64,000 nt of DNA, from sequence record NC_019407.1. One strand, 5' to 3'. The notes beneath the pieces were generated by a model. It searched no databases. It worked only from the letters and a program-made list of their open reading frames with translations, and was not told the origin of the DNA. Positions 7,742 through 51,830 of this stretch are shown here, one piece after another (positions within the stretch are counted from its first letter, which is position 1; each line of letters starts with the position of its first letter). The position numbers and the translations under genes are program-made.

Positions 7742-8311
7742 ATGACCGACTCCGCCAAGATCACCGGCGCGCTCGCGCTACTCGCCGTCGCGGCCGATAA
7801 TCTCCGCCAAGGCCCGGCCATGTCCAAAGCCGCCGACAACGTCACCAACGTCTGTAACTACGCCCTGACGCGCGCGGCCATGCTCAAGGCCGCCGACCAA
7901 ATCGGCGAGGCGCTGGAGGCGCTGGGCGCCCTGCAAGCGGGCGGCTATGTGATCGCCCGCCGCCGCGACGTTTTCACCGATGCGGGCGAGAAGCTGGGCG
8001 ACCTGTTGGCGGCGCTTTATGACGCCGTCCCGAACTACGCCGTAAGATCGCAGCGCCTCGCCGACGCCCTGGCCCCGGCGCGAAATTACGTCTATCAGCC
8101 CCGGTTCCGGGTCAAGCTGGACGCCGCGCCCGGCGCGCTTTTGACCGACTGCGACACGGGCGCAACGGTCTATTTCCAGCCGGGCGACGACGCCGACGCC
8201 TTCCGGGCCGAATTCGCCCCGTGGGTTCACGCCGCCAACGTGACGGGCGACGGCGCGGCCCTGGCCTCGATGATGAACCCGACCGCCGAAGAGTATTTCA
8301 GCCCCGCCTAA
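7742..8311 (+). CDS. Hypothetical early protein (189 aa)
   Basis: SD AAGGAGG; ATG at 7742 within the ORF-track frame 7370..8311. Confidence 0.75.
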   Translation: MTDSAKITGALALLAVAADNLRQGPAMSKAADNVTNVCNYALTRAAMLKAADQIGEALEALGALQAGGYVIARRRDVFTDAGEKLGDLLAALYDAVPNYAVRSQRLADALAPARNYVYQPRFRVKLDAAPGALLTDCDTGATVYFQPGDDADAFRAEFAPWVHAANVTGDGAALASMMNPTAEEYFSPA

Positions 8312-36855: not shown

Positions 36856-39800
36856 TTGGTCGATATCGTCGCCGGCACGCCTGTGTCCGTCTCCTATTCG
36901 GGGGCGTCGACGACCTATGTCGCGGCGGAAACGGGCCTGATGACCGTCCACCTGTGGGGCGGTGCGGGCGCGGGCGGCTATTACGCCAACGGCTCGGGCA
37001 ACGCCAACAAGTACGGCGGCGCCGGCGGCTACGCCACGCTCAACTTCCTGGTCCAGGAAGGCGACGTCCTGACGATCGAGGTTGGCCAGGGCGGGCAGGT
37101 CGCCACGGGCTCGGGCACCACGGCGACGGCGGGCGGCGCCGGCGGCTGGCCCGACGGCGGCTATGGCGGCAAGTCTTCGACCAACACTTCGATCGGTTTT
37201 GGCGGCGGCGGCGGCTCGACCCGCCTCTACCGCAATGGCGAACTGATCGGCGTCGCCGGCGGCGGCGGCGGCGCGACCGGCTTCTACCACGGCGGCAACG
37301 GCGGCGGCATGGTCGGTTTGGCCTCGGCCGACGCCTCCTCGGGCGCGGGCGGCACCCAGAGCGCGGGCGGCGCCGCCGGCTCGGGCACCCTGGCGATCCA
37401 GACCGGTCTAGGATTCCAAGGCGGGCGCGGTGGCGCGACCGCCTCGACCGCGCACGCCTATGCCGGCGGTGGCGGCGGCGGCGGGCTCTATGGCGGCGCC
37501 TCCAACGGCGGCGGCTCCGGCGCGCACGGATCGGGCGGCGGCGGCTCGGGCTATATCAACCAGAACCTCCTCTACTCTGGCCGTCTCCAGGCGGGCCGCA
37601 TCGACGCGCTCGGCGTGCCGTTCGATGTCGCCGGCATCCGCCCGGCCGGCGTCGCCGAGGGTGGCACGGGTCCGACGGTCGCGAGCACCGGCTGGGGCTC
37701 GATCACGCCGGGCGGCGACGGTTTCGCCTATCTGTCCCTCACCTCCGTGGCCTCGGCGACGGCCTTCCCGACCTCGGGTACGACCACGCTGGCCTATAGC
37801 GGCTCCCGGCAGGTCTATACGGTCACCCAGCTTTCCACCGTCGACATCGAGATGTGGGGCGGCGGCGGCGGCGGCGGCTTCTACACCTCTGGCGGGGCCT
37901 CGCCGCGCTATGGCGGCGCGGGCGGCTACACCAAGTTCACCAAGGTCCTGTTCCCCGGCGATATCGTCGAAATCGAGGTCGGTCAAGGCGGTCAGGCCCC
38001 GACCGGGGTCGGCGGCAATATCGGCGGCTTTGGCGGCTGGCCCAACGGCGGCGACGGCGGACGCTCGTCGGTTAACTCCGCCACCAACATGGGCGGCGGC
38101 GGCGGCTCGACCAACATCTATGTCAACGGACGTCTGCTCGGCGTCGCCTCGGGCGGCGGTGGCTCGACCGGTTTCTACAACGGCGGCAATGGCGGGGGCA
38201 AGTGGGGTCTTGCCGACGCCGCCGCCGCATCCGGCACGGCGGGCACCTGGGCGCGGGACAACAGCACTGGCACGGGCCTGGGGCGCGGCTTCTTCCTGCG
38301 CGGCGGCCATGGCTCGCCCAACGAATCGCGTGACGTCGCCCATCCCAACGCGGGCGCGGGCGGCGGCGGCGGCTACTGGGGCGGCGGCGGCGCGCGCGGC
38401 GGCTCGGGCACCCACGGCGCGGGTGGCGGCGGCTGCGGCTTCATCAACGGCGACCTGACCTGGAACCGCGACTATCAATGGGGCACGCAAGGCACCGGCC
38501 AGCCCTATACGGGCGGGGCCTACACTAGCGGCGTGGCCGTCGGCGGCACCAGCGGCAATACCGCCGGCTCGACGACCAATGGCGGCGACGGCCAGATCGT
38601 CTTCACCGTCACGGCCGCCAGCACCACGACCCTGCCGTCCGACAAGAACGCGCTGACCTATAGCGGCGCGGTCCAACACTATGTCGTCCCCACCGCCGGC
38701 GTCATTGACCTGAAGATGTGGGGCTCGGGCGGCGGCTCGGCCGTGCGTTCCACCGGCACGCCGGGACGTGGCGGCGGCGGCGGCTGCACGCAGGTTCCCT
38801 TCATCCCGATCAAGCCGGGCGATATCGTCACGTTCGCCGTGGGGCAAGGCGGCCGAGGCGCGGTCGACGCCAACTCCATCTCGCCCGGCGGCTGGCCCAA
38901 CGGGGGCTATTCGGGTCCGTCGGCCTCGGCCGGCGGCGGCGGCGCCAGCCTGTGCTACCTCAATGGCGAGCTAGTCGCGGTCGCCGGCTCCGGCGCGGGC
39001 GCGGGCATCTCCAACGGGGGTTTCGCCGGCGGCGCGGCCTCGTGCGATCCGGGCTACGTCAACTTCACCTCCCACGGGGGCACCCAGACCACGGCGGGCT
39101 GGTGCCCCACGCGTGTCCTCGAAGGCACCACCTACGGCACCTACATGCTGGGCGGCGATGGCCAGATCGACGGCGTCGCCCCCAACAACGTCAACGTCAA
39201 TACCGGCGGCGGCGGCGGCGGTGGCTACTATGGCGGCGGTGGCAACGCCACCAACTCCAGTCGCTATTGGGGCGGCGGCGGCGGCTCGGGCTACATCAAC
39301 CCGAAGTTCGCTGGCACCATCATTGGCGCGACCAGCGTCAACGCCGCCAACAACACCGATCCCGACTATGTCGCAGGCGTCGGCGTCGCGGGCGTCGGCT
39401 CGACGACCTACGCCAATCCCGTCACCAACGGCGGCGATGGCCGGATCGTCTTTACCTATGACACGCCGCCCAATCTGGTAGAAAGCCTGACCACGGCGGT
39501 GCCCGTCGACGGGGCGGTCAAGACCTACATCGTCGGCGCCGACGGTGATCTCGTCCTCGACCTGTGGGGCGGCGGCGGCGGCGCGGCGACCATTCTGGGC
39601 GGCGGTGGCAGCGAGCGCGGCGGCGGCGGCGGCTATGTCGGCGGCACCTATCCGGTCACCGCCGGGCAGGTCATCCGGTTCTATAATGGGCGCGGCGGCG
39701 GCGGCGGGGTCTATACGAGTGGCACGGCCACGGCGCTGGTGGGGACCGGCGGTCCAAGCGGCTGGCCCGATGGCGGTGCAGGCGGCTATTATGCCGGCGC

Positions 39801-42800
39801 GGGATCGAATGGCATCCTGGCGGGCGCTGGCGGCGGCTCCTCGCGTGTCTATGTCGACGACCAACTGATCCTCGTGGCCGGTGGCGGCGGCGGCGGCGGC
39901 GCGGGCACCACCACGACCACGCCGGGCGGCGGCGGCGGCTCGACGGGCGGCGACTCCGATGCGCCTGCGGGCCGCAACTTCGGGGCCACTCAGGCACGTG
40001 GCGGCTATAACTCCAACCGTCCGACCGATACGGTTTCGTCGGGTGGTCTCTTCCGAGGCGGCGCGGGCTATCTCTCGGGTGGTTCAAGCAGCATCAGCGC
40101 TCAATCGGCGGGCGGCGGCGGCGGCGGCGGCCTATTTGGCGGCGGCGGCTCGGGTAGCTCGGTCACCTATATTGGGGGCTCGGGCGGTTCCGGGTTCATC
40201 TTCGACGGGCTGGTGGTCTCGAAGAAGGACCCCTATCGCGCCGATGTCATCGCCCAGATGTCCTTCGAGTCCGGCGCGGTCGTCGCCGACGGGCGAGTGT
40301 GTGAAATCCAGCCGATCGACACTCCGCCGACGGCGGTCACCACCTCGCCCAAATATGGAGCCTATTGCGGTAACTATCCTGGCAGCGGTCATAGCACCAT
40401 GCCCGTGCCGGCCTTTGGCCTGCAAAACTTCACGATCGAGGCGTGGTTCAATCCGTCCTCGCTCGGCAACGGGGTTCTCTTTGCCTATGGCAACAGCGGT
40501 GTCGGCGGTTTTTCGCTGCACTACGCTTCCACCACGCTTTACCTGCGCCACAATGGCGACGCCGCCACCGATGTAACTTGGGCTGACACGGGCCGCACCG
40601 CCAATGTCTGGGCGCACTATGCCGTCGTCCGCGACATGGCCGGCACGCGCGTCTACAAGGACGGCCGGCTGGTTATGTCCTATGCCAACTCGATTGGCAC
40701 GACCTTCACCGCCACCCAACTGACCCTGGCTAACTATACCGGAGCCTCGGGGGCCAGCACGCGCTTTTCGGGCCGGATCGACGAGTTCCGCGCCACCCTG
40801 GGCGCGTGCCGGTATGTCAAGCCGTTCGTTCCCTCGTCGTTCGCGGCGCCCCTGTCGACCCCGCTCCCGACCCTAACGACCATCACCCAGGCCCCGCAGG
40901 GCTCGTCGGGCAACGCCGCCAATAATACCGATACGAACTATATCGCTGGACGCGGCGTCGGCGCTCAGACGCGCCAAACCGCCGGCACCGCCCCGTCGGG
41001 CGGCGATGGTCAGATCAGTTATTTCATCGCCACCTCGACCATCTCGGCGTCCGGGCCGATCGGCACGGTCACGGTCTCGGGCCTGACCGACGCCGCCGCC
41101 GGCGCCTTCTATCCCCTGCCCGGCGTGGGCTCGGTCGTCGTCGAGCCCTACACGGGCGCACGCGTCAACTACGAGGTCACCGAGGCCGTCGGCGCGCGAA
41201 TCAAGGTCGAGATGTGGGGCGGCGGGGGCGGCGGCAGTTCGGCCAACACCGCCCTGACCACCAATGGCGGCGGCGGCGGCGGCTATACGGTCATCGAACT
41301 TGATCTCGTCCAGGGCGATCGGATCACCGTCCAGACGCCGTCGGGTGGCGCGGGCGGCGTCAACGCCGGTAGTGGCTCGGCGATCAACCTCGGCGGCTAT
41401 CCCGACGGCGGCGATGGTTATCGTCCGGCCTTCACGGCGCTCAACTGCGGCGGCGGCGGCTCGGCGCGCCTGTGGGCGCAAGGCAATCTAGCGGCGGTCG
41501 CTGGCGGCGGCGGCGGCGCGGCCTATGGCGGCGGCGGCTATGACTTCCCTGGCGGCGCGGGCGGCGGCAACCTCGGCGGTCCGGGCGCCTATGATGGCGT
41601 CAACGCTCCCTTCCCCAATGGCGGCGGTACCCAGATCGCCGGCGGCGCGGGCACGGCGAACGGTTTCAATGGAGCCTCGCTGCAAGGCGGGCACGGCGGC
41701 GTCACTCCCAGCGTCGCCAACAACGGCTGCGGCGGCGGCGGCGGTTATTACGGTGGCGGCGGCGGCGGCGCCTATAAGGCGGGCGGCGGCGGCTCGGGCT
41801 ACGTCAACACCGGTCTGCCGGGCTACCGCACGGGCTCGACTACGGGCGGCTCTGGCAACCTGCCGGCCGGCATGTCTTCGCCTAACTACGTCTCGGGCAT
41901 CGGCGTCGGCTCGAACGGCAAGGGTGGGGCGTTCACCAACGGCGGCAATGGCCGGATCGTCATTTCGGTCATCACCCCGACGCCGGGCAATGCGTCGGGG
42001 TCGATCGGCACCGTCAACGTCTCGGGTCTGGACGAGTTCGGCCTGCTGATCGGCGTTCCGACGGGTGATCTCGACACCATCGATGTCGTGGTTCCGGTCG
42101 GGCAATCGGGCCAGCCCGGTTTCGCCGAAGGCCCGCTGACCACCATCGGCGTGGGTCCGGCTGAGACGATCCCCCAGGCCCAGGCCGTCGTCATCGTTCC
42201 GATCAACGATCAGACCTCGATCCTGATCGAGCCGCCGATCAACGCGCCGCTGGAGGTCCCTGGCGAAGGGATCGGCGAACTTGACACGATCCTCGTCTCG
42301 CCGTTCGATTCGACCCAGACGGCCGGCGTCGCCTTCGATGCGGCGGACGTGCCGACCATCACCCTGGTCGCCCCCGAGGCCGAAGCGGTCGAGATTCCGC
42401 CGGTCCTGACGTCGGGCGACATCGGCACGGTCATCGTCACCGCGCCCGAGGCGACCACCCAGGTCATCCCGCCGGTCGAGACCAGCGGCGACATCGGCAC
42501 CATCACCGTCGTGACGGTGACGGGCGAGGCGTCGTGGAACAACAACGTCTCGGCCTCGGGCGACATCGGCACGATCATCGTTACCGTGCCCGACGTCGTG
42601 GCCGTGGGCGACGATCTGGCCGAAGGGCTGATCGGCACGATCACGGTGATCGCGCCCGAGGGCGTGGCGCTCCAGGACGCCAATGTCGCGGCCGACATCG
42701 GCACCATCTCGGTCTATCCGATCGAAGGCGGTCAGCCGGGCGACGCGGTCGGCGACATCCCCTATATCCAGGTGGTCACGCCGGGCGCGACGGTTAACGC

Positions 42801-45252
42801 CTCGTCGGGCGACGACATCTCGCTCTACGCCGACATCGGCACGATCTACGTCCTCCAGGTTTACGGCCAGGGCTTCTGGATTTCCGAGGACAACTACGTC
42901 CACGCCCTGCCCGATCCGCTGATCGTCACCACCACCGCGCCGGAAGGTTCGGCGCGAGGCGACGTCCATATCGTCCAGGTCCTGCCGACCATCGTCGTCA
43001 CCCCGCCGGCCCCGGCCGCGACGGGCGAGGGTTTTGTTGACGGTTACACGGGCGACTTCATCATCCTGGTCGACCCGCCGGTTCCGCTGACGGAACTGAA
43101 CGCGAACGTCAACGTGGCGATGCCGCCGCCGATCGTCATCAATGGCAATGACGCGGAAACCTCGCTCGACGTCACGATCCCGTTCAGCGATACGGCGGTG
43201 TTCGTCTCCGGTCCCGAGGCCCTGGGCCTGGGCTTCCATGGCGGCGAGATGGGGCCGCCGATCCTGGTCACGCCGCCGGAAGGCGGGCCTGAGATTTCGG
43301 TCGAAATCTTTGTTGACCCCGGCACGATCCTGGTGGAGGCCCCGCGCTTCCACTATATCCCGCCGATCACGGTGCTCCCGCCTGAAGGGGTGGCGCTGGA
43401 CGCGCACTCGGCCGAGGCCTCCGGCGATCTGGGCACCATCACCATCGGGGTCCCGACTGGCGGCTATCAAGCCAACGTCGCCATCAACCTGCCGCTGCCG
43501 ACGATCTTCGTCAATGTCCCGCAGGTCGTGGTCTTCGCCTCGGTCGCCGTCTCGGGTGACGTCGGGACCATCACGCTCACGCCGCCTGACGCCACGCTGA
43601 CGGCGGGCGTCGATGCGTCGTTCGCCCTGCCCGGCCCGATTGTCGTCTCGACGCCCGAAGCCACGGCGACGGCGGGCTCCTCGGCGGCGACGTCCGGCGC
43701 CCTGGGCACGATCACGATCACGCCGCCCGAGGGTTTGGTCTCGACCGGCACGGCGGCGGCGACCTCGGGCGCGATTGGCACGATCGTCGTGTCGCCGTTC
43801 GACGGCAGCGTCTTCATCTCCTATCCGGGCAATGCGTCTGGCGCGATCGGTACGATCATCGTCACCCCGCCGGCGGCGAGCCTCACCCACGGGCACGACC
43901 TGTCGATCGCCCTGCCCGGCCCGATTATCATCACCGCGCCTGAGGCTCAACCTCAGGCGGGCGCGACGGTCTCGGGTGATATCGGCACGATCATCGTCAC
44001 CCCGCTCGACGGGCATGCCACCGGCGATACCGTCCTGGCTTCGGGGGATATTGGCACGATCGTCGTCTCCACCCCGGACGGCGAAGCGACGGGACGTGGT
44101 CTGGGCTCGGGTGCGATCGGCACGATCGTCATCACCCCGCCGGCCGCGACCCTGACGGCGGAGGCCAACAAGGCGGTCGCCCTGCCCGGCCCGATCATCG
44201 TCACCCCGCTGACCGGCGTGGGTCAGGTCCCCGCTGCGGCGGCGGGTGATCTGGCGACGATCACGATCACCAGCGTCCCCGAGGCGACGCTGTCGATCGG
44301 CCAGGACATTTCGGCCCAGATCGGAACCATCACGGTCACCCCGCCCGAGGCGTTCCCGCAAGGCTCGGTGTTCGTCGATCCGACCGACGAGATGGTCGTG
44401 CAGCTTCTGCCGCCGCAGGCCATCCTCTTCCAGGAAGCCACGGTCATCGTCGGCTTCCCGACGGTCTACCTGATCGCGCCCGAGGCCATCACCTATTCGC
44501 TGGCCGAGTTCGCCTCGATCACCTTGCTGCCGCCGGACGCCTATGTCGACGTCCCGCTGCCGCTGGGCAAGAACCGCATCCGCTATCGCCGCAACAACAC
44601 CGCCGGGCTCGCTCCGACCAGCCTGCGGCCCAACGAAATCGCGCTGAACGAGACCGACGGCCTGCTGTTCACGCGTGACGGGTCCGGCGCGGTCAAGGCC
44701 ACGCCGCTGGGCTTCCTGACCGGCGCGGGCGTACCCCCGCCGGTCACCGACAACGGCAAGGTCCTGTCGGGCGGCCTGTCTTGGGAAACGCCCAACACCC
44801 GCTATCTCCTGCCGGTGCGCAACGCGCCGCCGGCTGGCACGCGCATCGCCCTGGGCGAGGGCGTGGTTGGCGTTACGACCTTCACCCCGACGGTCGACGT
44901 CACCTACACGCGTCCGTTCTTCGTGGCCAAGACCATCGACATCCAGGCGCTGTCGGTGGATGTGGTGGGCGCCGCCGCCGCCACGGCCGAACTGGGCCTG
45001 ATCGGCTGGTCCCTGTCGGGCGTGCCCGGCGCGACCCTGGCGCTCGGTACGGTTAGCACCGCGACCACCGGCATCAAGACCGCGACCGGCACGGCCGTGA
45101 CCTTGACGCCGGGCTGGTATGCCTCCACCTTCAAGGTCACCGGCGCGGCGGGGGCGGCGTTCCGGGCTCCGACCGCACCGACGGCGATCGCGCCGGACTT
45201 CACCGTGACGCCGGGCGCCCCGGCGCCGGTCATGGCTGACCTGGAGGCCTAA
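36856..45252 (+). CDS. Giant virion appendage / adhesin-like protein (2798 aa): five Gly-rich units, LamG domain, ~24-aa SGDIGTI repeats, C-terminal fibre-like domain
   Basis: (L/M)WGG repeats; FTIEAW/WAHYAVVR/GRIDEFR LamG motifs; repeated GxIGTIxVxxPEA; TTG start uncertain. Confidence 0.75.
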   Translation: MVDIVAGTPVSVSYSGASTTYVAAETGLMTVHLWGGAGAGGYYANGSGNANKYGGAGGYATLNFLVQEGDVLTIEVGQGGQVATGSGTTATAGGAGGWPDGGYGGKSSTNTSIGFGGGGGSTRLYRNGELIGVAGGGGGATGFYHGGNGGGMVGLASADASSGAGGTQSAGGAAGSGTLAIQTGLGFQGGRGGATASTAHAYAGGGGGGGLYGGASNGGGSGAHGSGGGGSGYINQNLLYSGRLQAGRIDALGVPFDVAGIRPAGVAEGGTGPTVASTGWGSITPGGDGFAYLSLTSVASATAFPTSGTTTLAYSGSRQVYTVTQLSTVDIEMWGGGGGGGFYTSGGASPRYGGAGGYTKFTKVLFPGDIVEIEVGQGGQAPTGVGGNIGGFGGWPNGGDGGRSSVNSATNMGGGGGSTNIYVNGRLLGVASGGGGSTGFYNGGNGGGKWGLADAAAASGTAGTWARDNSTGTGLGRGFFLRGGHGSPNESRDVAHPNAGAGGGGGYWGGGGARGGSGTHGAGGGGCGFINGDLTWNRDYQWGTQGTGQPYTGGAYTSGVAVGGTSGNTAGSTTNGGDGQIVFTVTAASTTTLPSDKNALTYSGAVQHYVVPTAGVIDLKMWGSGGGSAVRSTGTPGRGGGGGCTQVPFIPIKPGDIVTFAVGQGGRGAVDANSISPGGWPNGGYSGPSASAGGGGASLCYLNGELVAVAGSGAGAGISNGGFAGGAASCDPGYVNFTSHGGTQTTAGWCPTRVLEGTTYGTYMLGGDGQIDGVAPNNVNVNTGGGGGGGYYGGGGNATNSSRYWGGGGGSGYINPKFAGTIIGATSVNAANNTDPDYVAGVGVAGVGSTTYANPVTNGGDGRIVFTYDTPPNLVESLTTAVPVDGAVKTYIVGADGDLVLDLWGGGGGAATILGGGGSERGGGGGYVGGTYPVTAGQVIRFYNGRGGGGGVYTSGTATALVGTGGPSGWPDGGAGGYYAGAGSNGILAGAGGGSSRVYVDDQLILVAGGGGGGGAGTTTTTPGGGGGSTGGDSDAPAGRNFGATQARGGYNSNRPTDTVSSGGLFRGGAGYLSGGSSSISAQSAGGGGGGGLFGGGGSGSSVTYIGGSGGSGFIFDGLVVSKKDPYRADVIAQMSFESGAVVADGRVCEIQPIDTPPTAVTTSPKYGAYCGNYPGSGHSTMPVPAFGLQNFTIEAWFNPSSLGNGVLFAYGNSGVGGFSLHYASTTLYLRHNGDAATDVTWADTGRTANVWAHYAVVRDMAGTRVYKDGRLVMSYANSIGTTFTATQLTLANYTGASGASTRFSGRIDEFRATLGACRYVKPFVPSSFAAPLSTPLPTLTTITQAPQGSSGNAANNTDTNYIAGRGVGAQTRQTAGTAPSGGDGQISYFIATSTISASGPIGTVTVSGLTDAAAGAFYPLPGVGSVVVEPYTGARVNYEVTEAVGARIKVEMWGGGGGGSSANTALTTNGGGGGGYTVIELDLVQGDRITVQTPSGGAGGVNAGSGSAINLGGYPDGGDGYRPAFTALNCGGGGSARLWAQGNLAAVAGGGGGAAYGGGGYDFPGGAGGGNLGGPGAYDGVNAPFPNGGGTQIAGGAGTANGFNGASLQGGHGGVTPSVANNGCGGGGGYYGGGGGGAYKAGGGGSGYVNTGLPGYRTGSTTGGSGNLPAGMSSPNYVSGIGVGSNGKGGAFTNGGNGRIVISVITPTPGNASGSIGTVNVSGLDEFGLLIGVPTGDLDTIDVVVPVGQSGQPGFAEGPLTTIGVGPAETIPQAQAVVIVPINDQTSILIEPPINAPLEVPGEGIGELDTILVSPFDSTQTAGVAFDAADVPTITLVAPEAEAVEIPPVLTSGDIGTVIVTAPEATTQVIPPVETSGDIGTITVVTVTGEASWNNNVSASGDIGTIIVTVPDVVAVGDDLAEGLIGTITVIAPEGVALQDANVAADIGTISVYPIEGGQPGDAVGDIPYIQVVTPGATVNASSGDDISLYADIGTIYVLQVYGQGFWISEDNYVHALPDPLIVTTTAPEGSARGDVHIVQVLPTIVVTPPAPAATGEGFVDGYTGDFIILVDPPVPLTELNANVNVAMPPPIVINGNDAETSLDVTIPFSDTAVFVSGPEALGLGFHGGEMGPPILVTPPEGGPEISVEIFVDPGTILVEAPRFHYIPPITVLPPEGVALDAHSAEASGDLGTITIGVPTGGYQANVAINLPLPTIFVNVPQVVVFASVAVSGDVGTITLTPPDATLTAGVDASFALPGPIVVSTPEATATAGSSAATSGALGTITITPPEGLVSTGTAAATSGAIGTIVVSPFDGSVFISYPGNASGAIGTIIVTPPAASLTHGHDLSIALPGPIIITAPEAQPQAGATVSGDIGTIIVTPLDGHATGDTVLASGDIGTIVVSTPDGEATGRGLGSGAIGTIVITPPAATLTAEANKAVALPGPIIVTPLTGVGQVPAAAAGDLATITITSVPEATLSIGQDISAQIGTITVTPPEAFPQGSVFVDPTDEMVVQLLPPQAILFQEATVIVGFPTVYLIAPEAITYSLAEFASITLLPPDAYVDVPLPLGKNRIRYRRNNTAGLAPTSLRPNEIALNETDGLLFTRDGSGAVKATPLGFLTGAGVPPPVTDNGKVLSGGLSWETPNTRYLLPVRNAPPAGTRIALGEGVVGVTTFTPTVDVTYTRPFFVAKTIDIQALSVDVVGAAAATAELGLIGWSLSGVPGATLALGTVSTATTGIKTATGTAVTLTPGWYASTFKVTGAAGAAFRAPTAPTAIAPDFTVTPGAPAPVMADLEA

Positions 45253-46765: not shown

Positions 46766-47032
46766 ATGGCCGAGCTTGTCCGCATCTATCACCCCGAGAC
46801 GAACGAGCCGTTCGACGTGATCCCGTCGACCGCCGAACGTCTGCGCCTGGGTCAAGGTCTGGACGGTCTGGTGTGGCTCTCGCAGCCCTTCTCCCGCGCC
46901 GCTGCCGAAGAGCCGGCGCCGGAAGCCCCCAAGGGGCGAGGTCGTAAGCGCGTCGCCGCGCCCGTCTCGGACGAAGCCGAAGACGATGGCTGGCGTGACG
47001 CGCCGACCGAGGACGCTTCCGAAGCCGCGTAA
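46766..47032 (+). CDS. Small acidic protein with GRGRKR (88 aa)
   Basis: SD GGAG; composition like 32627..33010. Confidence 0.7.
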   Translation: MAELVRIYHPETNEPFDVIPSTAERLRLGQGLDGLVWLSQPFSRAAAEEPAPEAPKGRGRKRVAAPVSDEAEDDGWRDAPTEDASEAA

Positions 47033-47333: not shown

Positions 47334-47362
47334 TTGACAGCCGTCGAGATTTGTGAGAGCCT
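47334..47362 (+). promoter_or_regulatory. Promoter of the Glu/Asp tRNA unit
   Basis: TTGACA-N17-GAGCCT with TGTG extension, same as at 48129. Confidence 0.7.
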
Positions 47363-47370
47363 CAACCATT

Positions 47371-47433
47371 ATGACGCACCTCCTGACCCGTTACGAACGC
47401 GAGGCCACCGGCCTCGATACCACCACCGCCTAA
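47371..47433 (+). CDS. Leaderless 20-aa leader peptide MTHLLTRYEREATGLDTTTA
   Basis: ATG 8 nt after the -10; contains GAA, GAG and GAT codons; followed by hairpin(s) and TTTT. Confidence 0.5.
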   Translation: MTHLLTRYEREATGLDTTTA

Positions 47434-47467
47434 AAGCGGTTCTGGTAACCGAGGCCTTTTGTCATGT

Positions 47468-47545
47468 GGCCCGGTCGTCTAGCGGTTTGCAGGATTCGTG
47501 ACTTTCAATCACGAGAGCGGAGTTCGAGTCTCCGTCGGGCCTCCA
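47468..47545 (+). tRNA. tRNA-Glu(TTC)
   Basis: Loop CT-TTC-AA, CCA. Confidence 0.9.
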
Positions 47546-47568
47546 CCCCCAAAGCCTCCTCTGAGCTT

Positions 47569-47643
47569 GGTGCGTTCGTATATCGGTCAATACTCCGGAT
47601 TGTCGATCCGGCAAGAGGGGTTCGATTCCCCTACGCACCGCCA
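47569..47643 (+). tRNA. tRNA-Asp(GTC)
   Basis: Loop TT-GTC-GA, G73, CCA. Confidence 0.9.
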
Positions 47644-48128: not shown

Positions 48129-48157
48129 TTGACATCCGTCTGAAGTTGTGAGAGCCT
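48129..48157 (+). promoter_or_regulatory. Promoter of the 14-tRNA sub-operon
   Basis: TTGACA-N17-GAGCCT. Confidence 0.75.
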
Positions 48158-48251: not shown

Positions 48252-48389
48252 ATGTTCGCCTTGTCGCATAACAGCCTGAGCACGAAAGCCGCCTCCCCGG
48301 CGTCGCTTTCGCTTGCCCTGCTGGCGACGGCCACGAAGCCCTCGACCAAGCCGACCACCTCGGCCTCGCACTCGACGGATCACCTCTAA
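48252..48389 (+). CDS. 45-aa attenuator leader peptide MFALSHNSLSTKAASPASLSLALLATATKPSTKPTTSASHSTDHL
   Basis: 41/45 residues are P, T, K, L, H, A or S, the amino acids of the downstream tRNAs. Confidence 0.85.
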   Translation: MFALSHNSLSTKAASPASLSLALLATATKPSTKPTTSASHSTDHL

Positions 48390-48454
48390 GGTATCCCGTC
48401 TCGGGTGCAGGCCTTGGAGCCGCACCCGCTACCAACATCCTGTTGACCTAGCGC

Positions 48455-48491
48455 AAGGCGGCTCCCAGCAAGGAGACCGCCTTTTCTTTTT
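48455..48491 (+). terminator. Attenuator terminator before tRNA-Pro
   Basis: AAGGCGG-CTCC/GGAG-A-CCGCCTT followed by TTCTTTTT. Confidence 0.85.
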
Positions 48492-48503
48492 CGCGTTGAT
48501 CAT

Positions 48504-48579
48504 CGGGGTGTAGCTCAGTCGGTAGAGCGCTCGGTTCGGGACCGAGAGGCCGTGGGTTCGAGTCCCGCCACCCAGACCA
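48504..48579 (+). tRNA. tRNA-Pro(CGG)
   Basis: C1-G72, A73, loop TT-CGG-GA; G2.A71 mismatch. Confidence 0.9.
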
Positions 48580-48586
48580 ACGCCAT

Positions 48587-48661
48587 CGGGATGTAGCTCA
48601 GCGGTAGAGCGCGCGGCTGGGGGCCGCGAGGCCGCAGGTTCGAGACCTGCCACCCCGACCA
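48587..48661 (+). tRNA. tRNA-Pro(GGG)
   Basis: Loop CT-GGG-GG, CCA. Confidence 0.85.
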
Positions 48662-48666
48662 ACAAT

Positions 48667-48739
48667 GCTGCTGCGCCTGGATCGGCGCCGGCCCCTTGGT
48701 ATGGGGAAGTAGAAGGTTCAATTCCTTCCGGCAGCACCA
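48667..48739 (+). tRNA. tRNA-Thr(GGT), atypical D-arm
   Basis: G1-C72/C2-G71, loop TT-GGT-AT, T-loop TTCAATT; C at position 8. Confidence 0.65.
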
Positions 48740-48744
48740 ACAAC

Positions 48745-48814
48745 GCCGATGCCTCTAGGAGGACACGTCTTTCGTAATGACGTCAGGTGGGTGCGATCCC
48801 CACTTTCGGCTCCA
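48745..48814 (+). tRNA. tRNA-Thr(CGT)-like, reduced D-arm, T-loop TGCGATC
   Basis: G1-C72/C2-G71, U73, loop TT-CGT-AA, CCA; 70 nt. Confidence 0.55.
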
Positions 48815-48849
48815 TCAAGATGATCGAGGAGAGATCAGACGAAACAAAT

Positions 48850-48936
48850 GGATGTGTCACCTCAGTGGCGAGAGGACCGGGCTCTTAATCCGGCAGCGAA
48901 AGCTCATCGTGGGTTCGAGTCCCACCACATCCTCCA
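48850..48936 (+). tRNA. tRNA-Lys(CTT) with long variable arm
   Basis: Loop CT-CTT-AA; V-arm AGC-GAAA-GCT; 87 nt. Confidence 0.85.
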
Positions 48937-48941
48937 ATAAT

Positions 48942-49031
48942 GCACGAGTGACCCGAGCGGCGAAGGGCGTCGACTTTTAATCGACTGGGCGTCCAGCCTC
49001 ACCGAGGGTTCGAGTCCCTCCTCGTGCTCCA
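48942..49031 (+). tRNA. tRNA-Lys(TTT) with long variable arm
   Basis: Loop CT-TTT-AA; 18-nt V region; class II-like D-arm; 90 nt. Confidence 0.85.
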
Positions 49032-49037
49032 AAATGT

Positions 49038-49123
49038 GCGAAAGTGGCGGAACAAGGTAGACGCACCGGTCTCAGGTACCGGCGGCTTCGGTCATGAGGG
49101 TTCGAGTCCCTCCTTTCGTACCA
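49038..49123 (+). tRNA. tRNA-Leu(CAG)
   Basis: Class II cloverleaf, loop CT-CAG-GT. Confidence 0.9.
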
Positions 49124-49130
49124 ACGACAT

Positions 49131-49215
49131 GCCGGTCTGGCGGAAATGGCAGACGCAGTGGCTTCAAGTCCCACCGCCTTCGGGCGTCCCGGTTCGATGC
49201 CGGGGACCGGCACCA
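49131..49215 (+). tRNA. tRNA-Leu(CAA)
   Basis: Loop TT-CAA-GT. Confidence 0.9.
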
Positions 49216-49221
49216 CCATGA

Positions 49222-49309
49222 TGCGAAGTGGCGGAATTTGGTAGACGCACCGGCATGAGAGGCCGGCGCCCTTCGGGGCGTGAGGGTTCGAGTCCCTTCT
49301 TCGCGACCA
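49222..49309 (+). tRNA. tRNA-Leu(GAG)
   Basis: Loop AT-GAG-AG. Confidence 0.85.
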
Positions 49310-49322
49310 AAGACGAGATCAT

Positions 49323-49394
49323 GCCGGCCGGCGCAGGCGCGCGGGGGAGGTTGTGTCCCTCCTTGGCTCAGTTCGATACTGAGGGTCGGTTCCA
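49323..49394 (+). tRNA. tRNA-His(GTG), minimal D-loop, no G-1
   Basis: Loop TT-GTG-TC; 7/5 stems; D-arm GCGC-AGGC-GCGC. Confidence 0.7.
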
Positions 49395-49399
49395 GTTAC

Positions 49400-49470
49400 G
49401 GGGTATGCGCAGGGCGCAGGCATCCTTTGCAAGGAAGTCGGGGTGGGTTCGAGTCCCACATACTCCACCA
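49400..49470 (+). tRNA. tRNA-Ala(TGC), minimal D-arm
   Basis: G3.U70 identity pair, A73, loop TT-TGC-AA. Confidence 0.8.
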
Positions 49471-49474
49471 ATAC

Positions 49475-49562
49475 GGTAGGTTGGCTGAGAGGCCTAAGGC
49501 GCCCGTTTCGAAAACGGGAGAACCGCAAGGTTCCGTGGGTTCGAATCCCACACCTACCTCCA
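49475..49562 (+). tRNA. tRNA-Ser(CGA)
   Basis: Long V-arm, loop TT-CGA-AA; U73. Confidence 0.9.
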
Positions 49563-49566
49563 ACAT

Positions 49567-49654
49567 GGATGTATGGCTGAGAGGCCGAAGGCGCCCGCTT
49601 GGAAAGCGGGTGAACCGCAAGGTTCCGTAGGTTCGAATCCTACTGCATCCGCCA
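49567..49654 (+). tRNA. tRNA-Ser(GGA)
   Basis: Long V-arm, G73. Confidence 0.9.
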
Positions 49655-49658
49655 ACAT

Positions 49659-49745
49659 GGTAGGTGGTTCCGGCCTGGGGCCGGACCCGGTTGCTAACCG
49701 GCCGGAGCCGCAAGGCTTGGGGTTCGATTCCTCCTCCTACCGCCA
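49659..49745 (+). tRNA. tRNA-Ser(GCT) with 8/4 fold and 6-7 bp D-stem
   Basis: 8-bp acceptor (one U.U), 4-bp T-stem, TCCGGC/GCCGGA D-stem, G73. Confidence 0.8.
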
Positions 49746-49753
49746 CTTCGATG

Positions 49754-50008
49754 TTGACACCCGCGACGCGGCCTGTCATACGTCACGACAGAGCGAACAC
49801 CCCCCGGCCGGGTTTGTTGTCATACCGGGTCGTCACGCCCCGTCGGGGCTCTAGTAGCTCTTCGTGTGGAGTTTTCCGCCTCCCTCCCAGACAAGGAGGC
49901 GGACCCAACCAACATCGCGATCTCCCGTGATCGTCGGCGACGGGCGCCGTCAGAGACCTTTGCCTGCGCGGCTCCGCTGCGGCCCTGGTCTCGTCCCGAC
50001 CAAATTTT
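49754..50008 (+). ncRNA. Promoter plus candidate structured non-coding transcript(s) ending in CCA-AATTTTTT
   Basis: TTGACA-N17-CATACG; multiple stems; no convincing ORF. Confidence 0.45.
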
Positions 50009-50021
50009 TTCGTCGTGGTGC

Positions 50022-50050
50022 TTGACACTGCGAAACTGTTCTGCTAGGGT
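50022..50050 (+). promoter_or_regulatory. Promoter of the 12-tRNA sub-operon
   Basis: TTGACA-N17-TAGGGT. Confidence 0.85.
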
Positions 50051-50057
50051 TCACGTC

Positions 50058-50156
50058 ATGAGCAAGACCTATCGTCAATTTGTGCGCCAGATTCAGGTCG
50101 TCCGGAATATCCGGGCGGGCCGCTCGCGCATGGCTGACGAAGGGTTCAGGGACTAG
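50058..50156 (+). CDS. Leaderless 32-aa attenuator peptide MSKTYRQFVRQIQVVRNIRAGRSRMADEGFRD
   Basis: ATG 7 nt after the -10; codons 5-19 are all Y/R/Q/F/V/I/N, matching the downstream tRNAs. Confidence 0.85.
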   Translation: MSKTYRQFVRQIQVVRNIRAGRSRMADEGFRD

Positions 50157-50186
50157 GTCCCACACCACGCTCAACCAGCTTTCGAG

Positions 50187-50223
50187 AGGCCCGCCTGGAA
50201 ACCCCAGGCGGGCCTTTTCTTTT
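50187..50223 (+). terminator. Attenuator terminator before tRNA-Tyr
   Basis: 12-bp AGGCCCGCCTGG/CCAGGCGGGCCT followed by TTTCTTTT. Confidence 0.9.
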
Positions 50224-50258
50224 CCCCCTTTCGATCACGGAGATCGCCAAACAGACAC

Positions 50259-50343
50259 GGATGCTTAAAGCTGGAGGGCTCCAGCCGGGGACTGTAAATC
50301 CCCTCTCTTCGGAGGAGTGGTTCGATCCCACAAGCATCCACCA
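50259..50343 (+). tRNA. tRNA-Tyr(GTA) with 8/4 fold and 6-bp D-stem/4-nt D-loop
   Basis: GGATGCTT/AAGCATCC, GCTGGA-GGGC-TCCAGC, GGGGA-CTGTAAA-TCCCC, GTGG/CCAC, A73. Confidence 0.85.
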
Positions 50344-50348
50344 ACCAC

Positions 50349-50424
50349 GGACTCGTAGCTCAGCAGGTAGAGCGCCGGCTTGAAACCCCGGAGGTCGGAG
50401 GTTCGACTCCTCCCGTTTCCACCA
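50349..50424 (+). tRNA. tRNA-Phe(GAA)
   Basis: Loop TT-GAA-AC; two acceptor mismatches. Confidence 0.85.
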
Positions 50425-50429
50425 ACAAC

Positions 50430-50505
50430 GCCCGATGAGCCAGATGGGAAGGCGCCGCCGTGACATGGCGGGATTGAGAAGGTTCGATTCCTTCATCAGG
50501 CACCA
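50430..50505 (+). tRNA. tRNA-Val(GAC)
   Basis: Loop GT-GAC-AT. Confidence 0.85.
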
Positions 50506-50507
50506 AT

Positions 50508-50583
50508 GCAAGTGTAGCTCAGTTGGTAGAGCAGCGGACCGATAATCCGCCCGTCCCTGGTTCGAGTCCAGGCATTTGCACCA
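50508..50583 (+). tRNA. tRNA-Ile(GAT), C33
   Basis: Loop CC-GAT-AA. Confidence 0.85.
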
Positions 50584-50590
50584 ATTCTGA

Positions 50591-50665
50591 TGTGGCATAG
50601 CTCAGGGGTAGAGCGCGCGCTTGATAAGCGTGAGGTCGGGGGTTCGAAGCCCTCTGCCACTACCA
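50591..50665 (+). tRNA. tRNA-Ile(GAT), second copy
   Basis: Loop TT-GAT-AA; U1.U72 mismatch. Confidence 0.85.
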
Positions 50666-50698
50666 GTTTCCAGGCCGGCGGAGATGCGCCGGACCTGA

Positions 50699-50774
50699 TG
50701 GCGTTTAGCATAGTGGGAGTGCAGGGGTGTCACATACCTCGATCGAACTGGTTCGATTCCAGTAACGCCAACCA
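50699..50774 (+). tRNA. tRNA-Val(CAC)
   Basis: Loop GT-CAC-AT. Confidence 0.85.
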
Positions 50775-50779
50775 AATGT

Positions 50780-50853
50780 TGAGGGTTCGTCTAATGGTAG
50801 GACGGCTGGGTCTGGTCCAGCTAATCTAGGTTCGAGTCCTAGCCCCTCATCCA
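50780..50853 (+). tRNA. tRNA-Gln(CTG)
   Basis: U1-A72, loop GT-CTG-GT. Confidence 0.85.
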
Positions 50854-50860
50854 AGCTTGT

Positions 50861-50934
50861 TCTCGGGTGGTCTAATGGTAAGACATCTGGTTTTGGTCCA
50901 GAGGATTGGGGTTCGATTCCTTGGCCGAGAACCA
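50861..50934 (+). tRNA. tRNA-Gln(TTG)
   Basis: U1-A72, loop TT-TTG-GT. Confidence 0.85.
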
Positions 50935-50949
50935 ACTATTTGAATTTAT

Positions 50950-51024
50950 TCCAGTCAATGCACAAGGTGTGCAGCGGCACTGTTAATGCCTGTGAGCCCG
51001 GTTCGATTCCGGGGTCTGGAGCCA
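50950..51024 (+). tRNA. tRNA-Asn(GTT)
   Basis: U1-A72, G73, loop CT-GTT-AA. Confidence 0.85.
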
Positions 51025-51050
51025 ACATGCCGGCCTCGGCCGGCACATGC

Positions 51051-51133
51051 GCCCTGGTAACCGAGGGGGATTACGAATCCCTTAGTCGTAGCAGGAGTTG
51101 AAAAGGGTGGTTCGAATCCACTCCAGGGTGCCA
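51051..51133 (+). tRNA. tRNA-Arg(ACG)-like lacking a D-arm, with 22-nt extra region
   Basis: 7-bp acceptor, only TAACCGA before the anticodon stem, loop TT-ACG-AA, normal T-arm, CCA. Confidence 0.65.
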
Positions 51134-51140
51134 AATTCAT

Positions 51141-51223
51141 AGCGCGCAGGCCGAGCAGGATCATCGTCAGGCGTCGCCCTCCGAAGGCGAAGAGGCCCGG
51201 TTCGAGTCCGGGGCGCGCTGCCA
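51141..51223 (+). tRNA. tRNA-Arg(CCG) with enlarged D-loop
   Basis: Loop CT-CCG-AA; 17-nt D-loop. Confidence 0.8.
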
Positions 51224-51226
51224 TCC

Positions 51227-51304
51227 GCGCGGGTAGCTCAATGGACCCAGAGCAGCCGTCTTCTACACGGTGGGTTGGGGGTTCGAGTCCCTCCCCGCGC
51301 GCCA
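51227..51304 (+). tRNA. tRNA-Arg(TCT)
   Basis: Loop CT-TCT-AC. Confidence 0.9.
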
Positions 51305-51650: not shown

Positions 51651-51662
51651 GGCGCTGATGTG

Positions 51663-51794
51663 TTGACACTCCTCGGAGGCTCGGCTAAAACCAGCAGCGT
51701 CAGAGCGGCGTTGGACCACGAGGTCCGCCGCGAGCTTCTGCGTTGTCGTCAGGAACGGCCCGTCAGCAATCCCGCTGGCGGGTCGTTTCGTTTT
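51663..51794 (+). ncRNA. Promoter plus candidate ~100-nt sRNA with its own terminator
   Basis: TTGACA-N17-TAAAAC; rod hairpin; 13-bp terminator with AATCCC loop followed by TTCGTTTT; no ORF. Confidence 0.55.
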
Positions 51795-51830
51795 GGGCGC
51801 AATGCGACGTTCAGTCCAACCATGGGTAGT

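Follow-up and report, generated by a model that had tools for sequence, protein, structure and literature searches.

A Probable Ribosome-Mediated Transcription Attenuator Upstream of a tRNA Operon in Caulobacter Phage CcrMagneto

Positions 50022–50223 of the genome of Caulobacter phage CcrMagneto carry no annotation in GenBank and lie directly upstream of a block of phage tRNA genes; the locus thus raises the question of how the transcription of these tRNA genes is controlled. The tRNA arrays of large phages are believed to keep translation going in late infection or to substitute for host tRNAs that have been depleted, and the matching of tRNA gene expression to demand is usually ascribed to growth-rate and stringent control at the promoter level. 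We addressed this question in a window of 64,000 nt, which is identical to positions 1–64000 of CcrMagneto (JX100812.1), a phiCbK-like siphophage of the subfamily Dolichocephalovirinae. The tRNA genes of this phage are located at 47.0–51.3 kb and are flanked by tail-fibre genes and a PhoH-like gene. An earlier sequence-only reading had interpreted the unannotated region as a leader-peptide attenuator; all of the elements it had named were found where it had placed them, and the interpretation was supported by the presence and the evolutionary constraint of all the parts. We estimated at about 0.78 the probability that the region is a ribosome-mediated transcription attenuator controlling the phage tRNA operon. 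Below, the tRNA blocks are designated A to D, the region at 50022–50223 is designated leader D, and all features are on the plus strand.

The promoter of leader D consists of a -35 hexamer, TTGACA (50022–50027), and, after a 17-nt spacer, a -10-like hexamer, TAGGGT (50045–50050), which is separated by 7 nt from the ATG at 50058. A consensus promoter scan found no sigma-70 promoter of the TATAAT type, and the promoters of the tRNA region in general combined TTGACA with weak -10 elements. Upstream of the -35 hexamer, the A/T tract AAATTTTTT (50002–50010) resembles an UP element; the same tract was observed 5' of the TTGACA sites at 47334, 48129, and 51663, and its combination with TTGACA was common to the promoters of leaders B, C, and D. 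The tract at 50002–50010 also provides the T-run for a weak hairpin (49986–50002), a hairpin that may end the preceding tRNA unit, and the TTGACA site at 51663 belongs to a promoter–terminator unit without an obvious ORF (51663–51795). The distance from the -35 hexamer to the ATG was 35–37 nt in all lineages checked, and from the promoter spacing we infer a transcription start on the A of the ATG or immediately beside it. The 32-codon leader ORF of the sequence-only reading was confirmed: it extends from the ATG at 50058 to the TAG at 50154–50156 (50058–50156, 32 codons plus stop) and encodes the peptide MSKTYRQFVRQIQVVRNIRAGRSRMADEGFRD. No Shine-Dalgarno sequence was found before it, and the ORF is probably leaderless; Caulobacter has many leaderless mRNAs and translates them efficiently (PMC4117421).

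Downstream of the ORF, a strong intrinsic terminator with the composition GGCCCGCCTGG-AAACC-CCAGGCGGGCC-TTTTCTTTT occupies 50188–50223. Its 5' arm (region 3, 50188–50199) also forms the 3' strand of the antiterminator described below, and it is completed by a 3' arm (region 4, 50204–50214) and a U tract, TTTTCTTTT (50215–50223). The terminator is annotated as such in phiCbK, Swift, Karma, and Colossus. It had previously been described as a 12-bp stem; the terminator is present, and its stem comprises 11 G/C-rich pairs plus A–U extensions instead. From this terminator through the end of block D, no -35-like site of the form TTGAC[A/G/C] was found; therefore, the tRNAs behind it appear to be made by read-through only.

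Block D (50259–51304) contains the 12 tRNA genes that had been proposed: Tyr-GTA (50259–50343), Phe-GAA (50349–50424), Val-GAC (50430–50505), two copies of Ile-GAT (50508–50583 and 50591–50665), Val-CAC (50699–50774), Gln-CTG (50780–50853), Gln-TTG (50861–50934), Asn-GTT (50950–51024), Arg-ACG (51051–51135), Arg-CCG (51141–51223), and Arg-TCT (51227–51304). Eight of them were found by ARAGORN at default settings. The arms of the remaining four (Tyr-GTA, Asn-GTT, Arg-ACG, and Arg-CCG) are atypical, and these genes were identified by reading of the anticodon loop and by alignment to homologues called in relatives; among these four, ARAGORN at a low threshold recovered Arg-CCG only. The gene at 50950–51024 had been called as Ile-AAT by ARAGORN, and this call was rejected in favor of Asn-GTT. 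Alignment with relatives revealed compensatory changes in the anticodon stem of Arg-ACG, and the four atypical tRNAs of block D may be non-functional. Further atypical genes were observed in block C (both Thr genes, His, and Ser-GCT), and phages of this group carry about eight more tRNAs than annotated. The phiCbK genome paper reported only tRNAs and predicted terminators, and stated that Thr and Tyr tRNAs were absent (PMC3556154).

The codons of leader D correspond closely to this gene content. Codons 5–19 (50070–50114; Y R Q F V R Q I Q V V R N I R), which are exactly the sensing codons listed previously, use only seven amino acids (Y, F, V, I, Q, N, and R), all of which are amino acids of the downstream tRNAs. 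These seven amino acids constitute 30.5% of the residues in the long ORFs of the phage, and the 15-residue in-set run was the longest across all six frames of the 64 kb, in agreement with the claim that it lies beyond chance; the next longest runs for this set, of 13 and 12 residues, are arginine-rich stretches in overlapping ORFs. A metagenome scan for the terminator pattern proved too generic, with a single true relative among the 120 stretches returned, and the other stretches served as a negative control: the true relative carried such a run, and 0 of the 119 unrelated terminators of the same pattern did. Six of the 15 codons in the run end in A or U, compared with a GC3 of 0.885 (P = 0.008 by synonymous redraw), which bears out the enrichment of rare A/U-ending codons reported earlier. 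Every anticodon of block D is represented in leader D. The statement that the run is read by the downstream tRNAs was correct for codons 5–19 and required one amendment for Arg-TCT, which is matched outside the run, only by the AGG at codon 31. With the peptide fixed, the match at the level of tRNA species was not significant beyond the amino-acid level (P = 0.1–0.4); tRNA-species coverage was therefore dropped as evidence.

We analyzed the evolutionary characteristics of leader D in related genomes. It was observed in Shapirovirus, Poindextervirus, Colossusvirus, Bertelyvirus, eight Brevundimonas phages, and six metagenomic contigs, and no such blocks or leaders were found in the outgroup phages Lacusarx and RpAliso, despite their related tail tube protein. 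The ORF comprised 28–33 codons across the relatives and 31–32 codons in the 17 sequences that were aligned; in these 17 sequences, the start position was conserved, all indels in the ORF were multiples of three, and the stop remained in one alignment column while its codon varied among TAG, TAA, and TGA. The order of residues in the run varied and the set remained constant, as in YRQFVRQIQVVRNIR, YRNNVRQIRVRQFN, YRQNVQNIRVVRFYR, and RFNRVQQVNFVRYI, and the run recurred in reshuffled order in at least 17 lineages. In columns 5–18, 15 of 16 alternative residues belonged to the tRNA set (P = 2e-7), compared with 9 of 26 in the ORF tail, which equals background; the phages compared share ancestry, and such counts are not fully independent. 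The swaps within the run exchanged chemically unlike residues (F/N, V/R, and I/N/Y) and yet stayed within the tRNA set.

The RNA structure was addressed using helix statistics from the alignment of the 17 leader D sequences. Region 2 (UCCGGGCGGGCC, 50110–50121) can pair either with an upstream segment or, as the antiterminator, with the 5' arm of the terminator. The latter pairing, 50110–50121 with 50188–50199, had been noted before and was verified as 12 bp, including one G·U, with a free energy of -29 kcal/mol. In the alignment, 93% of the cells were paired in the antiterminator (2:3) and 99.5% in the terminator (3:4), with four pairs changed on both sides in each. The upstream partner, region 1 (UCGUCCGG, 50098–50105), lies inside the sensing codons and is the 5' arm of a 1:2 hairpin formed with 50111–50118, in which 93% of the cells were paired and two pairs were changed on both sides; its register differed in Colossus, PW, and the contig L016, with the pairing kept. 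Both 1:2 and 3:4 were independently predicted by RNAalifold. The lower stem of the long hairpin in Magneto was not recovered as conserved by RNAalifold, and per-lineage folding was used instead. A small hairpin, GGGAC-UAG-GUCCC (50149–50161), holds the stop codon in its loop and was present in 17 of 17 sequences with differing stems; it may act in pausing or synchronisation. Neither the 1:2 hairpin, which sequesters the antiterminator, nor the hairpin around the stop codon had been part of the sequence-only reading.

The changes in region 3 were informative with regard to the two pairings. Two columns of region 3 changed along with both of their alternative partners, forming the linked sets 58/137/151 and 56/139/149 of alignment columns. 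One linked set changed from G/C/G to A/U/A in SC and BL9 and was A/U/G in Bajun; the other was G·U/U-A, U-A/A-U, or G-C/C-G depending on the lineage. Such three-way linked changes are expected of a switch between two pairings. Moreover, the pairing of region 2 with the terminator arm of the same phage had a value of -25.7 kcal/mol, compared with -22.8 kcal/mol for the arms of other phages and -12.4 kcal/mol for shuffled sequence, and 50,000 permutations yielded no better value than that of the own-arm pairing. In the contigs L148 and L150, the CCGGGCGGG motif is read in a different frame, as IPGG and not as RAG; thus, the conservation of "AGRS" reflects the RNA and not the peptide.

The polarity of the switch was modelled thermodynamically and with findpath, for which a ribosome footprint was assumed. 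Full-length leader D RNA adopted the long 1:2 hairpin together with the terminator (-84 kcal/mol); because the terminator always forms at equilibrium in the full-length RNA, the decision must be kinetic. Naked nascent RNA pre-formed the hairpin, with a barrier to the antiterminator of 26 kcal/mol in Magneto and 14–28 kcal/mol in 15 lineages, and untranslated RNA, being trapped in the hairpin, should therefore terminate. When the ribosomal A site was placed at codons 3–15/16, region 2 was free and the full 2:3 pairing was reached over a barrier of 0–14 kcal/mol (4–10 kcal/mol at codons 5–16); when it was placed at codons 17–26, region 2 was covered and the folding models gave the terminator only. 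Codons 17–19 overlap region 2, and a stall there would thus favour termination. The folding models reproduced the polarity that had been proposed, in which a stall leads to read-through, and they suggest that slow decoding of the listed codons would promote read-through according to the classical logic.

We proposed the following mechanism. Host RNA polymerase would start at or next to the ATG and produce a leaderless mRNA, and a ribosome would translate the 32-codon leader, in which codons 5–19 would call for exactly those tRNA species that the downstream genes encode, or at a minimum for the same amino-acid families. If decoding were fast, the ribosome would cover region 2 (A site at about codons 17–26) or would have passed it, in which case the local 1:2 hairpin would re-form; by either route, 3:4 would fold and transcription would end before tRNA-Tyr. 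If any one of these codons were decoded slowly, the ribosome would be held up over the lower stem or region 1, which would leave region 2 free to pair with the emerging region 3; no terminator would form, and the 12 tRNA genes would be transcribed. The switch would constitute a negative feedback that raises phage tRNA synthesis when the supply of charged tRNA limits translation and lowers it when charged tRNA is plentiful. The signal in vivo may be tRNA abundance, tRNA charging, or the loss of tRNAs to host defences.

The repetition of this design before other tRNA blocks, where it tracks block content, was not included in the sequence-only reading. In front of block C, a promoter with the -35 hexamer TTGACA (48129–48134) and a 5' UTR of roughly 85 nt precede gp080, an annotated ORF of 45 codons (48252–48389). 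Residues 8–42 of gp080 all belong to {P, T, K, L, H, A, S}, a set identical to that of the 14 tRNAs that follow (48504–49752: two Pro, two Thr, two Lys, three Leu, His, Ala, and three Ser). This 35-residue run was the longest in the window for its set, followed by one of 17, and leader C was 80–93% in-set in 10 sequences (binomial P = 3e-7 to 2e-13); if wobble is applied strictly, Ala-UGC does not read six GCC codons of leader C. Cross-tabulation of leader and amino-acid set (2x2) gave a Fisher P of 1e-63. Single-sequence prediction placed a relay of alternative helices at 48362–48492, namely a:b (48362–78 with 48396–48413), b:c (48402–08 with 48422–28), a c:d antiterminator (48416–23 with 48458–65), and a terminator just before tRNA-Pro (48457–81, U tract to 48492) that is also annotated in phiCbK. 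According to the same prediction, this relay (ORF 3' end:b, b:c, c:d, and d:e terminator) gives the same polarity as leader D: RNA free of ribosomes is in the antiterminated state, and termination should follow when a ribosome reaches the ORF end. We concluded that small ORFs of the gp080 type are probably regulatory leaders and not proteins.

The leader B unit (47334–47463; -35 TTGACA at 47334–47339) comprises a leaderless ORF of 20 codons, MTHLLTRYEREATGLDTTTA (47371–47433), before the tRNA-Glu and tRNA-Asp genes of block B (47468–47643). The ORF contains conserved Glu, Glu, and Asp codons, and a long hairpin with the stop codon in its loop (47410–47456) is followed by TTTTGTC. Leader B was conserved in all lineages, with a U tract that was weak in most. 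We proposed that the same design governs block C, with gp080 as its leader, and it probably governs block B as well. No leader was found for block A (Trp/Gly), where gp077 (46766–47032) showed no enrichment in W or G; the tRNA-Trp of the Brevundimonas phages directly adjoins a protein of about 170 aa.

All three leaders recurred across the related phages and metagenomic contigs examined, and differences in block content among these genomes provided natural experiments. The tRNA-Trp gene has moved to the end of block C in SC, BL9, and RB23, and a Trp codon was observed inside the sensing run of leader C only in these three; in Bambus, Trp occurred only in the C-terminal tail of leader C ("EGWP*"). 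Block B of the metagenomic contig L016 consists of Glu, Asp, and Cys, and its leader B was the only one with Cys codons, of which it had three. Similarly, the contig L171 carries tRNA-Cys in block D, and only its leader D had a Cys codon, which is located in the run. Comparison of these sequences indicates that, three times, Trp or Cys codons joined a leader when tRNA-Trp or tRNA-Cys joined its block. Exceptions were also observed: the run included Ser in BL9, and Thr in both L148 and L171, with no tRNA to match, the block D genes Thr-CGT (L145) and Met-CAT (L148) had no counterpart among the codons of the run, and PW had a Trp at a boundary position of leader D. Sequence comparison established the parts, their conservation, their covariation, and the coupling of leader codons to tRNA content, and it argues strongly for a functional link between the leader codons and the downstream tRNAs.

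We considered three other explanations for these observations. The codon run might reflect chance composition beside an ordinary terminator; indeed, the run was picked after the tRNAs had been seen, and arginine-rich runs also occur in off-frame GC-rich sequence. However, the run was the longest of its kind in the window, as was that of a second leader with a different set, it recurred reshuffled in those 17 or more lineages, and it was missing from each of the 119 unrelated terminators; the comparative data refute chance composition, to which we assigned practically no weight. It is also highly improbable that leader D encodes a small functional basic peptide, or is a small RNA unit, with the tRNAs derived from constitutive leakage of the terminator and with a codon match that has no regulatory role. 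The C-terminal half of the ORF was not conserved as a protein (17 of 26 alternative residues out of the set), the run swapped chemically unlike residues within the tRNA set, "AGRS" proved to be an RNA motif that lies in another frame in L148 and L150, leaders gained Trp and Cys codons alongside the gain of those tRNAs by the block, and the antiterminator covaried with the terminator. These observations outweighed the points that fit this explanation, namely the annotation of gp080 as a protein in GenBank, the basic character of the leader peptide together with the frequent occurrence of small proteins in phages, and the similar promoter–terminator unit at 51663–51795. A conserved small phage protein was specifically rejected on account of the variable tail, the non-conservative substitutions in the run, and the RNA motif that is read in two frames.

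The third explanation retains the same parts and reverses, or otherwise alters, the logic, so that fast translation would cause read-through and a stall would cause termination, as in a stringent-like brake on tRNA genes during starvation. We regard this as unlikely, although less so than the two above. The kinetic modelling of 15 lineages gave read-through only with ribosomes in the sensing codons, and the regulatory codons lie in region 1, the sequestering partner of the antiterminator, which is the classical layout for stall-dependent read-through; in leader C, the antiterminated state of naked RNA and the termination expected of a ribosome at the ORF end point in the same direction. On the other side, nascent RNA without region 4 forms the antiterminator at equilibrium even with a ribosome at the stop codon, a leader B ribosome that reached the stop would melt the hairpin and thereby couple fast translation to read-through, and extra tRNA would be useless when amino acids limit translation.

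We returned to the attenuator interpretation and compared leader D with known systems. Leader D showed every structural hallmark of the attenuator class that could be tested from sequence, including a short conserved ORF between a promoter and an intrinsic terminator, here upstream of tRNA genes, and a 12-bp antiterminator that cannot coexist with the terminator and that shows three-way covariation and own-arm preference. It departs from the class in the genes regulated, which are 12 tRNA genes and not genes for biosynthesis or aminoacyl-tRNA synthetases. Searches of Rfam 15 yielded only tRNA hits at gathering scores and chance-level hits over 50055–50225 in E-value mode, and thus no leader RNA family or riboswitch in Rfam 15, including the Trp, His, Leu, Thr, and T-box families, was matched.

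In enterobacteria, the leader of ilvGMEDA (ilvL) has about 32 residues, approximately half of which are regulatory codons for several amino acids (multivalent attenuation), and it forms alternative 1:2, 2:3, and 3:4 hairpins in which a stall on the regulatory codons results in read-through. By analogy, ilvL appears to be the closest known system to leader D, with which it shares a peptide of about 32 residues, multivalent codons, the three alternative hairpins, and the stall-to-read-through logic. The two differ in that ilvL controls enzymes of amino-acid biosynthesis and responds to three amino acids from a start led by a Shine-Dalgarno sequence in a cellular genome, whereas the viral leader D would control tRNA genes and respond to seven amino acids, with 11 anticodons, from a putatively leaderless start; there is no sequence similarity between them. 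The trpL, hisL, leuL, thrL, and pheL leaders likewise share with leader D a promoter, a leader ORF, control codons in region 1, an antiterminator that overlaps the 5' arm of the terminator, and an intrinsic terminator before the regulated genes. Each of them is concerned with one or two amino acids, and their output restores the amino acid and hence charging; in contrast, the output of leader D would be the tRNA molecules themselves, so that the quantity sensed is the product. The pheST leader (pheM) is an attenuator of phenylalanyl-tRNA synthetase and resembles leader D as a leader-peptide attenuator of a component of the translation apparatus that responds to cognate codon decoding, but it regulates a synthetase for one amino acid, whereas leader D would regulate tRNAs. 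T-box riboswitches also sense tRNA status by means of a terminator/antiterminator switch; however, they do so without translation, by direct contact of a specifier codon and the T-box sequence with uncharged tRNA, whereas the codons of leader D are in frame in a conserved ORF and the Rfam search gave no T-box match. The present locus resembles the tRNA arrays of T4, T5, vibriophages, and mycobacteriophages in that numerous tRNA genes form blocks in the genome of a lytic phage.

In the literature searched, we found no description of a codon-matched leader peptide that controls a phage tRNA array, and no described example of cognate codon decoding that feeds back on the transcription of tRNA genes. 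We consider it rather probable, with somewhat less confidence than for leader D itself, that the phiCbK group possesses a "tRNA-stat", in which about 30 tRNA genes are arranged in operons, each gated by a leader ORF that lists the codons it serves, and in which tRNA gene transcription is set directly by the rate of ribosome decoding at the cognate codons. If this is true, leader D would represent the first case of leader-peptide attenuation that controls tRNA gene expression, and it would provide a built-in sensor of tRNA depletion in infection, as caused by host shut-off, dilution, or tRNA-cleaving defences. This bears on the ideas that phage tRNAs compensate for the loss of host tRNAs or counter tRNA-targeting defences, for which the leader would be the sensor. 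The laboratory host Caulobacter NA1000 and phiCbK offer a tractable model for such a switch, which is of a size suited to reporter assays and, on a leaderless mRNA, would respond to seven amino acids simultaneously. Taken together, if the attenuator is confirmed, the tRNA arrays of this phage group would be regulated, demand-driven modules.

The stop codon of leader D, the putative 32-codon leader ORF upstream of tRNA block D in Caulobacter phage CcrMagneto, is found within a small hairpin (50149-50161), where it falls in the loop. This placement was always observed at the homologous positions of 16 relatives too, and the stem sequence varied from lineage to lineage.

In relatives, the interval separating the block D terminator from tRNA-Tyr includes a strong Shine-Dalgarno sequence followed by a mini-ORF of 4-5 codons, located at 5094-5121 in L002, 6174-6204 in L004 and 14167-14193 in L008 (related phage sequences), and at 8159-8185 in the metagenomic contig L016. 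The peptides encoded by these mini-ORFs are MNNGG, MTGGD, MTGG and MTGN, each ending at a stop codon. In Magneto, the element is reduced to a remnant, GGAGATCGCC (50239-50248). In one Colossus-like metagenomic phage (L171), a 65-codon ORF is inserted at 2154-2351, flanked by the leader D terminator on one side and tRNA-Tyr on the other; in this phage, a protein gene would also be under attenuator control, alongside the tRNAs.

Further promoter and hairpin stretches were observed near the tRNA blocks. A fourth unit (51653-51795), upstream of gp081, has an A/T tract and TTGACA (51663) as in the leader promoters and a -10 element of TAAAAC, followed by an RNA of approximately 70 nt and, at ~51762-51795, by a hairpin that resembles a terminator and has a T-run. 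No obvious leader ORF was found in this unit, which may be a small RNA or a further attenuator. At 49754-50001, TTGACA immediately 3' of tRNA-Ser-GCT precedes a spacer of approximately 250 nt containing the hairpin CCGCCTCC...GGAGGCGG (~49877-49908) and a weak, terminator-like second hairpin (49986-50002). Just 5' of the tRNA region, a glycine-rich, repetitive protein of 2798 aa is encoded (36856-45252), homologues of which are annotated in relatives as having a lectin-like domain or as tail proteins.

At the position of Magneto tRNA-Arg-TCT (51227-51304), phiCbK (L137 6227-6304) has an annotated tRNA with anticodon TCC (codon GGA). The two genes are apparently homologous apart from a switch of anticodon. 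Eight atypical tRNA-like genes with unusual D or variable arms lie on the plus strand of the window: Thr-GGT (48667-48739), Thr-CGT (~48746-48815), His-GTG (~49322-49395), Ser-GCT (49659-49745), Tyr-GTA (50259-50343), Asn-GTT (50950-51024), Arg-ACG (51051-51135) and Arg-CCG (51141-51223). None is present in the GenBank annotation of the window, none reached the gathering score of the Rfam tRNA model, and seven were undetected by ARAGORN with default settings, the sole one called being Asn-GTT, labeled Ile-AAT. The phiCbK genome paper reported Thr and Tyr tRNAs to be absent (PMC3556154); the atypical Thr-GGT, Thr-CGT and Tyr-GTA genes would run counter to this published absence. With the eight atypical genes counted, the phage tRNAs would cover 18 amino acids, that is, all except Met and Cys.
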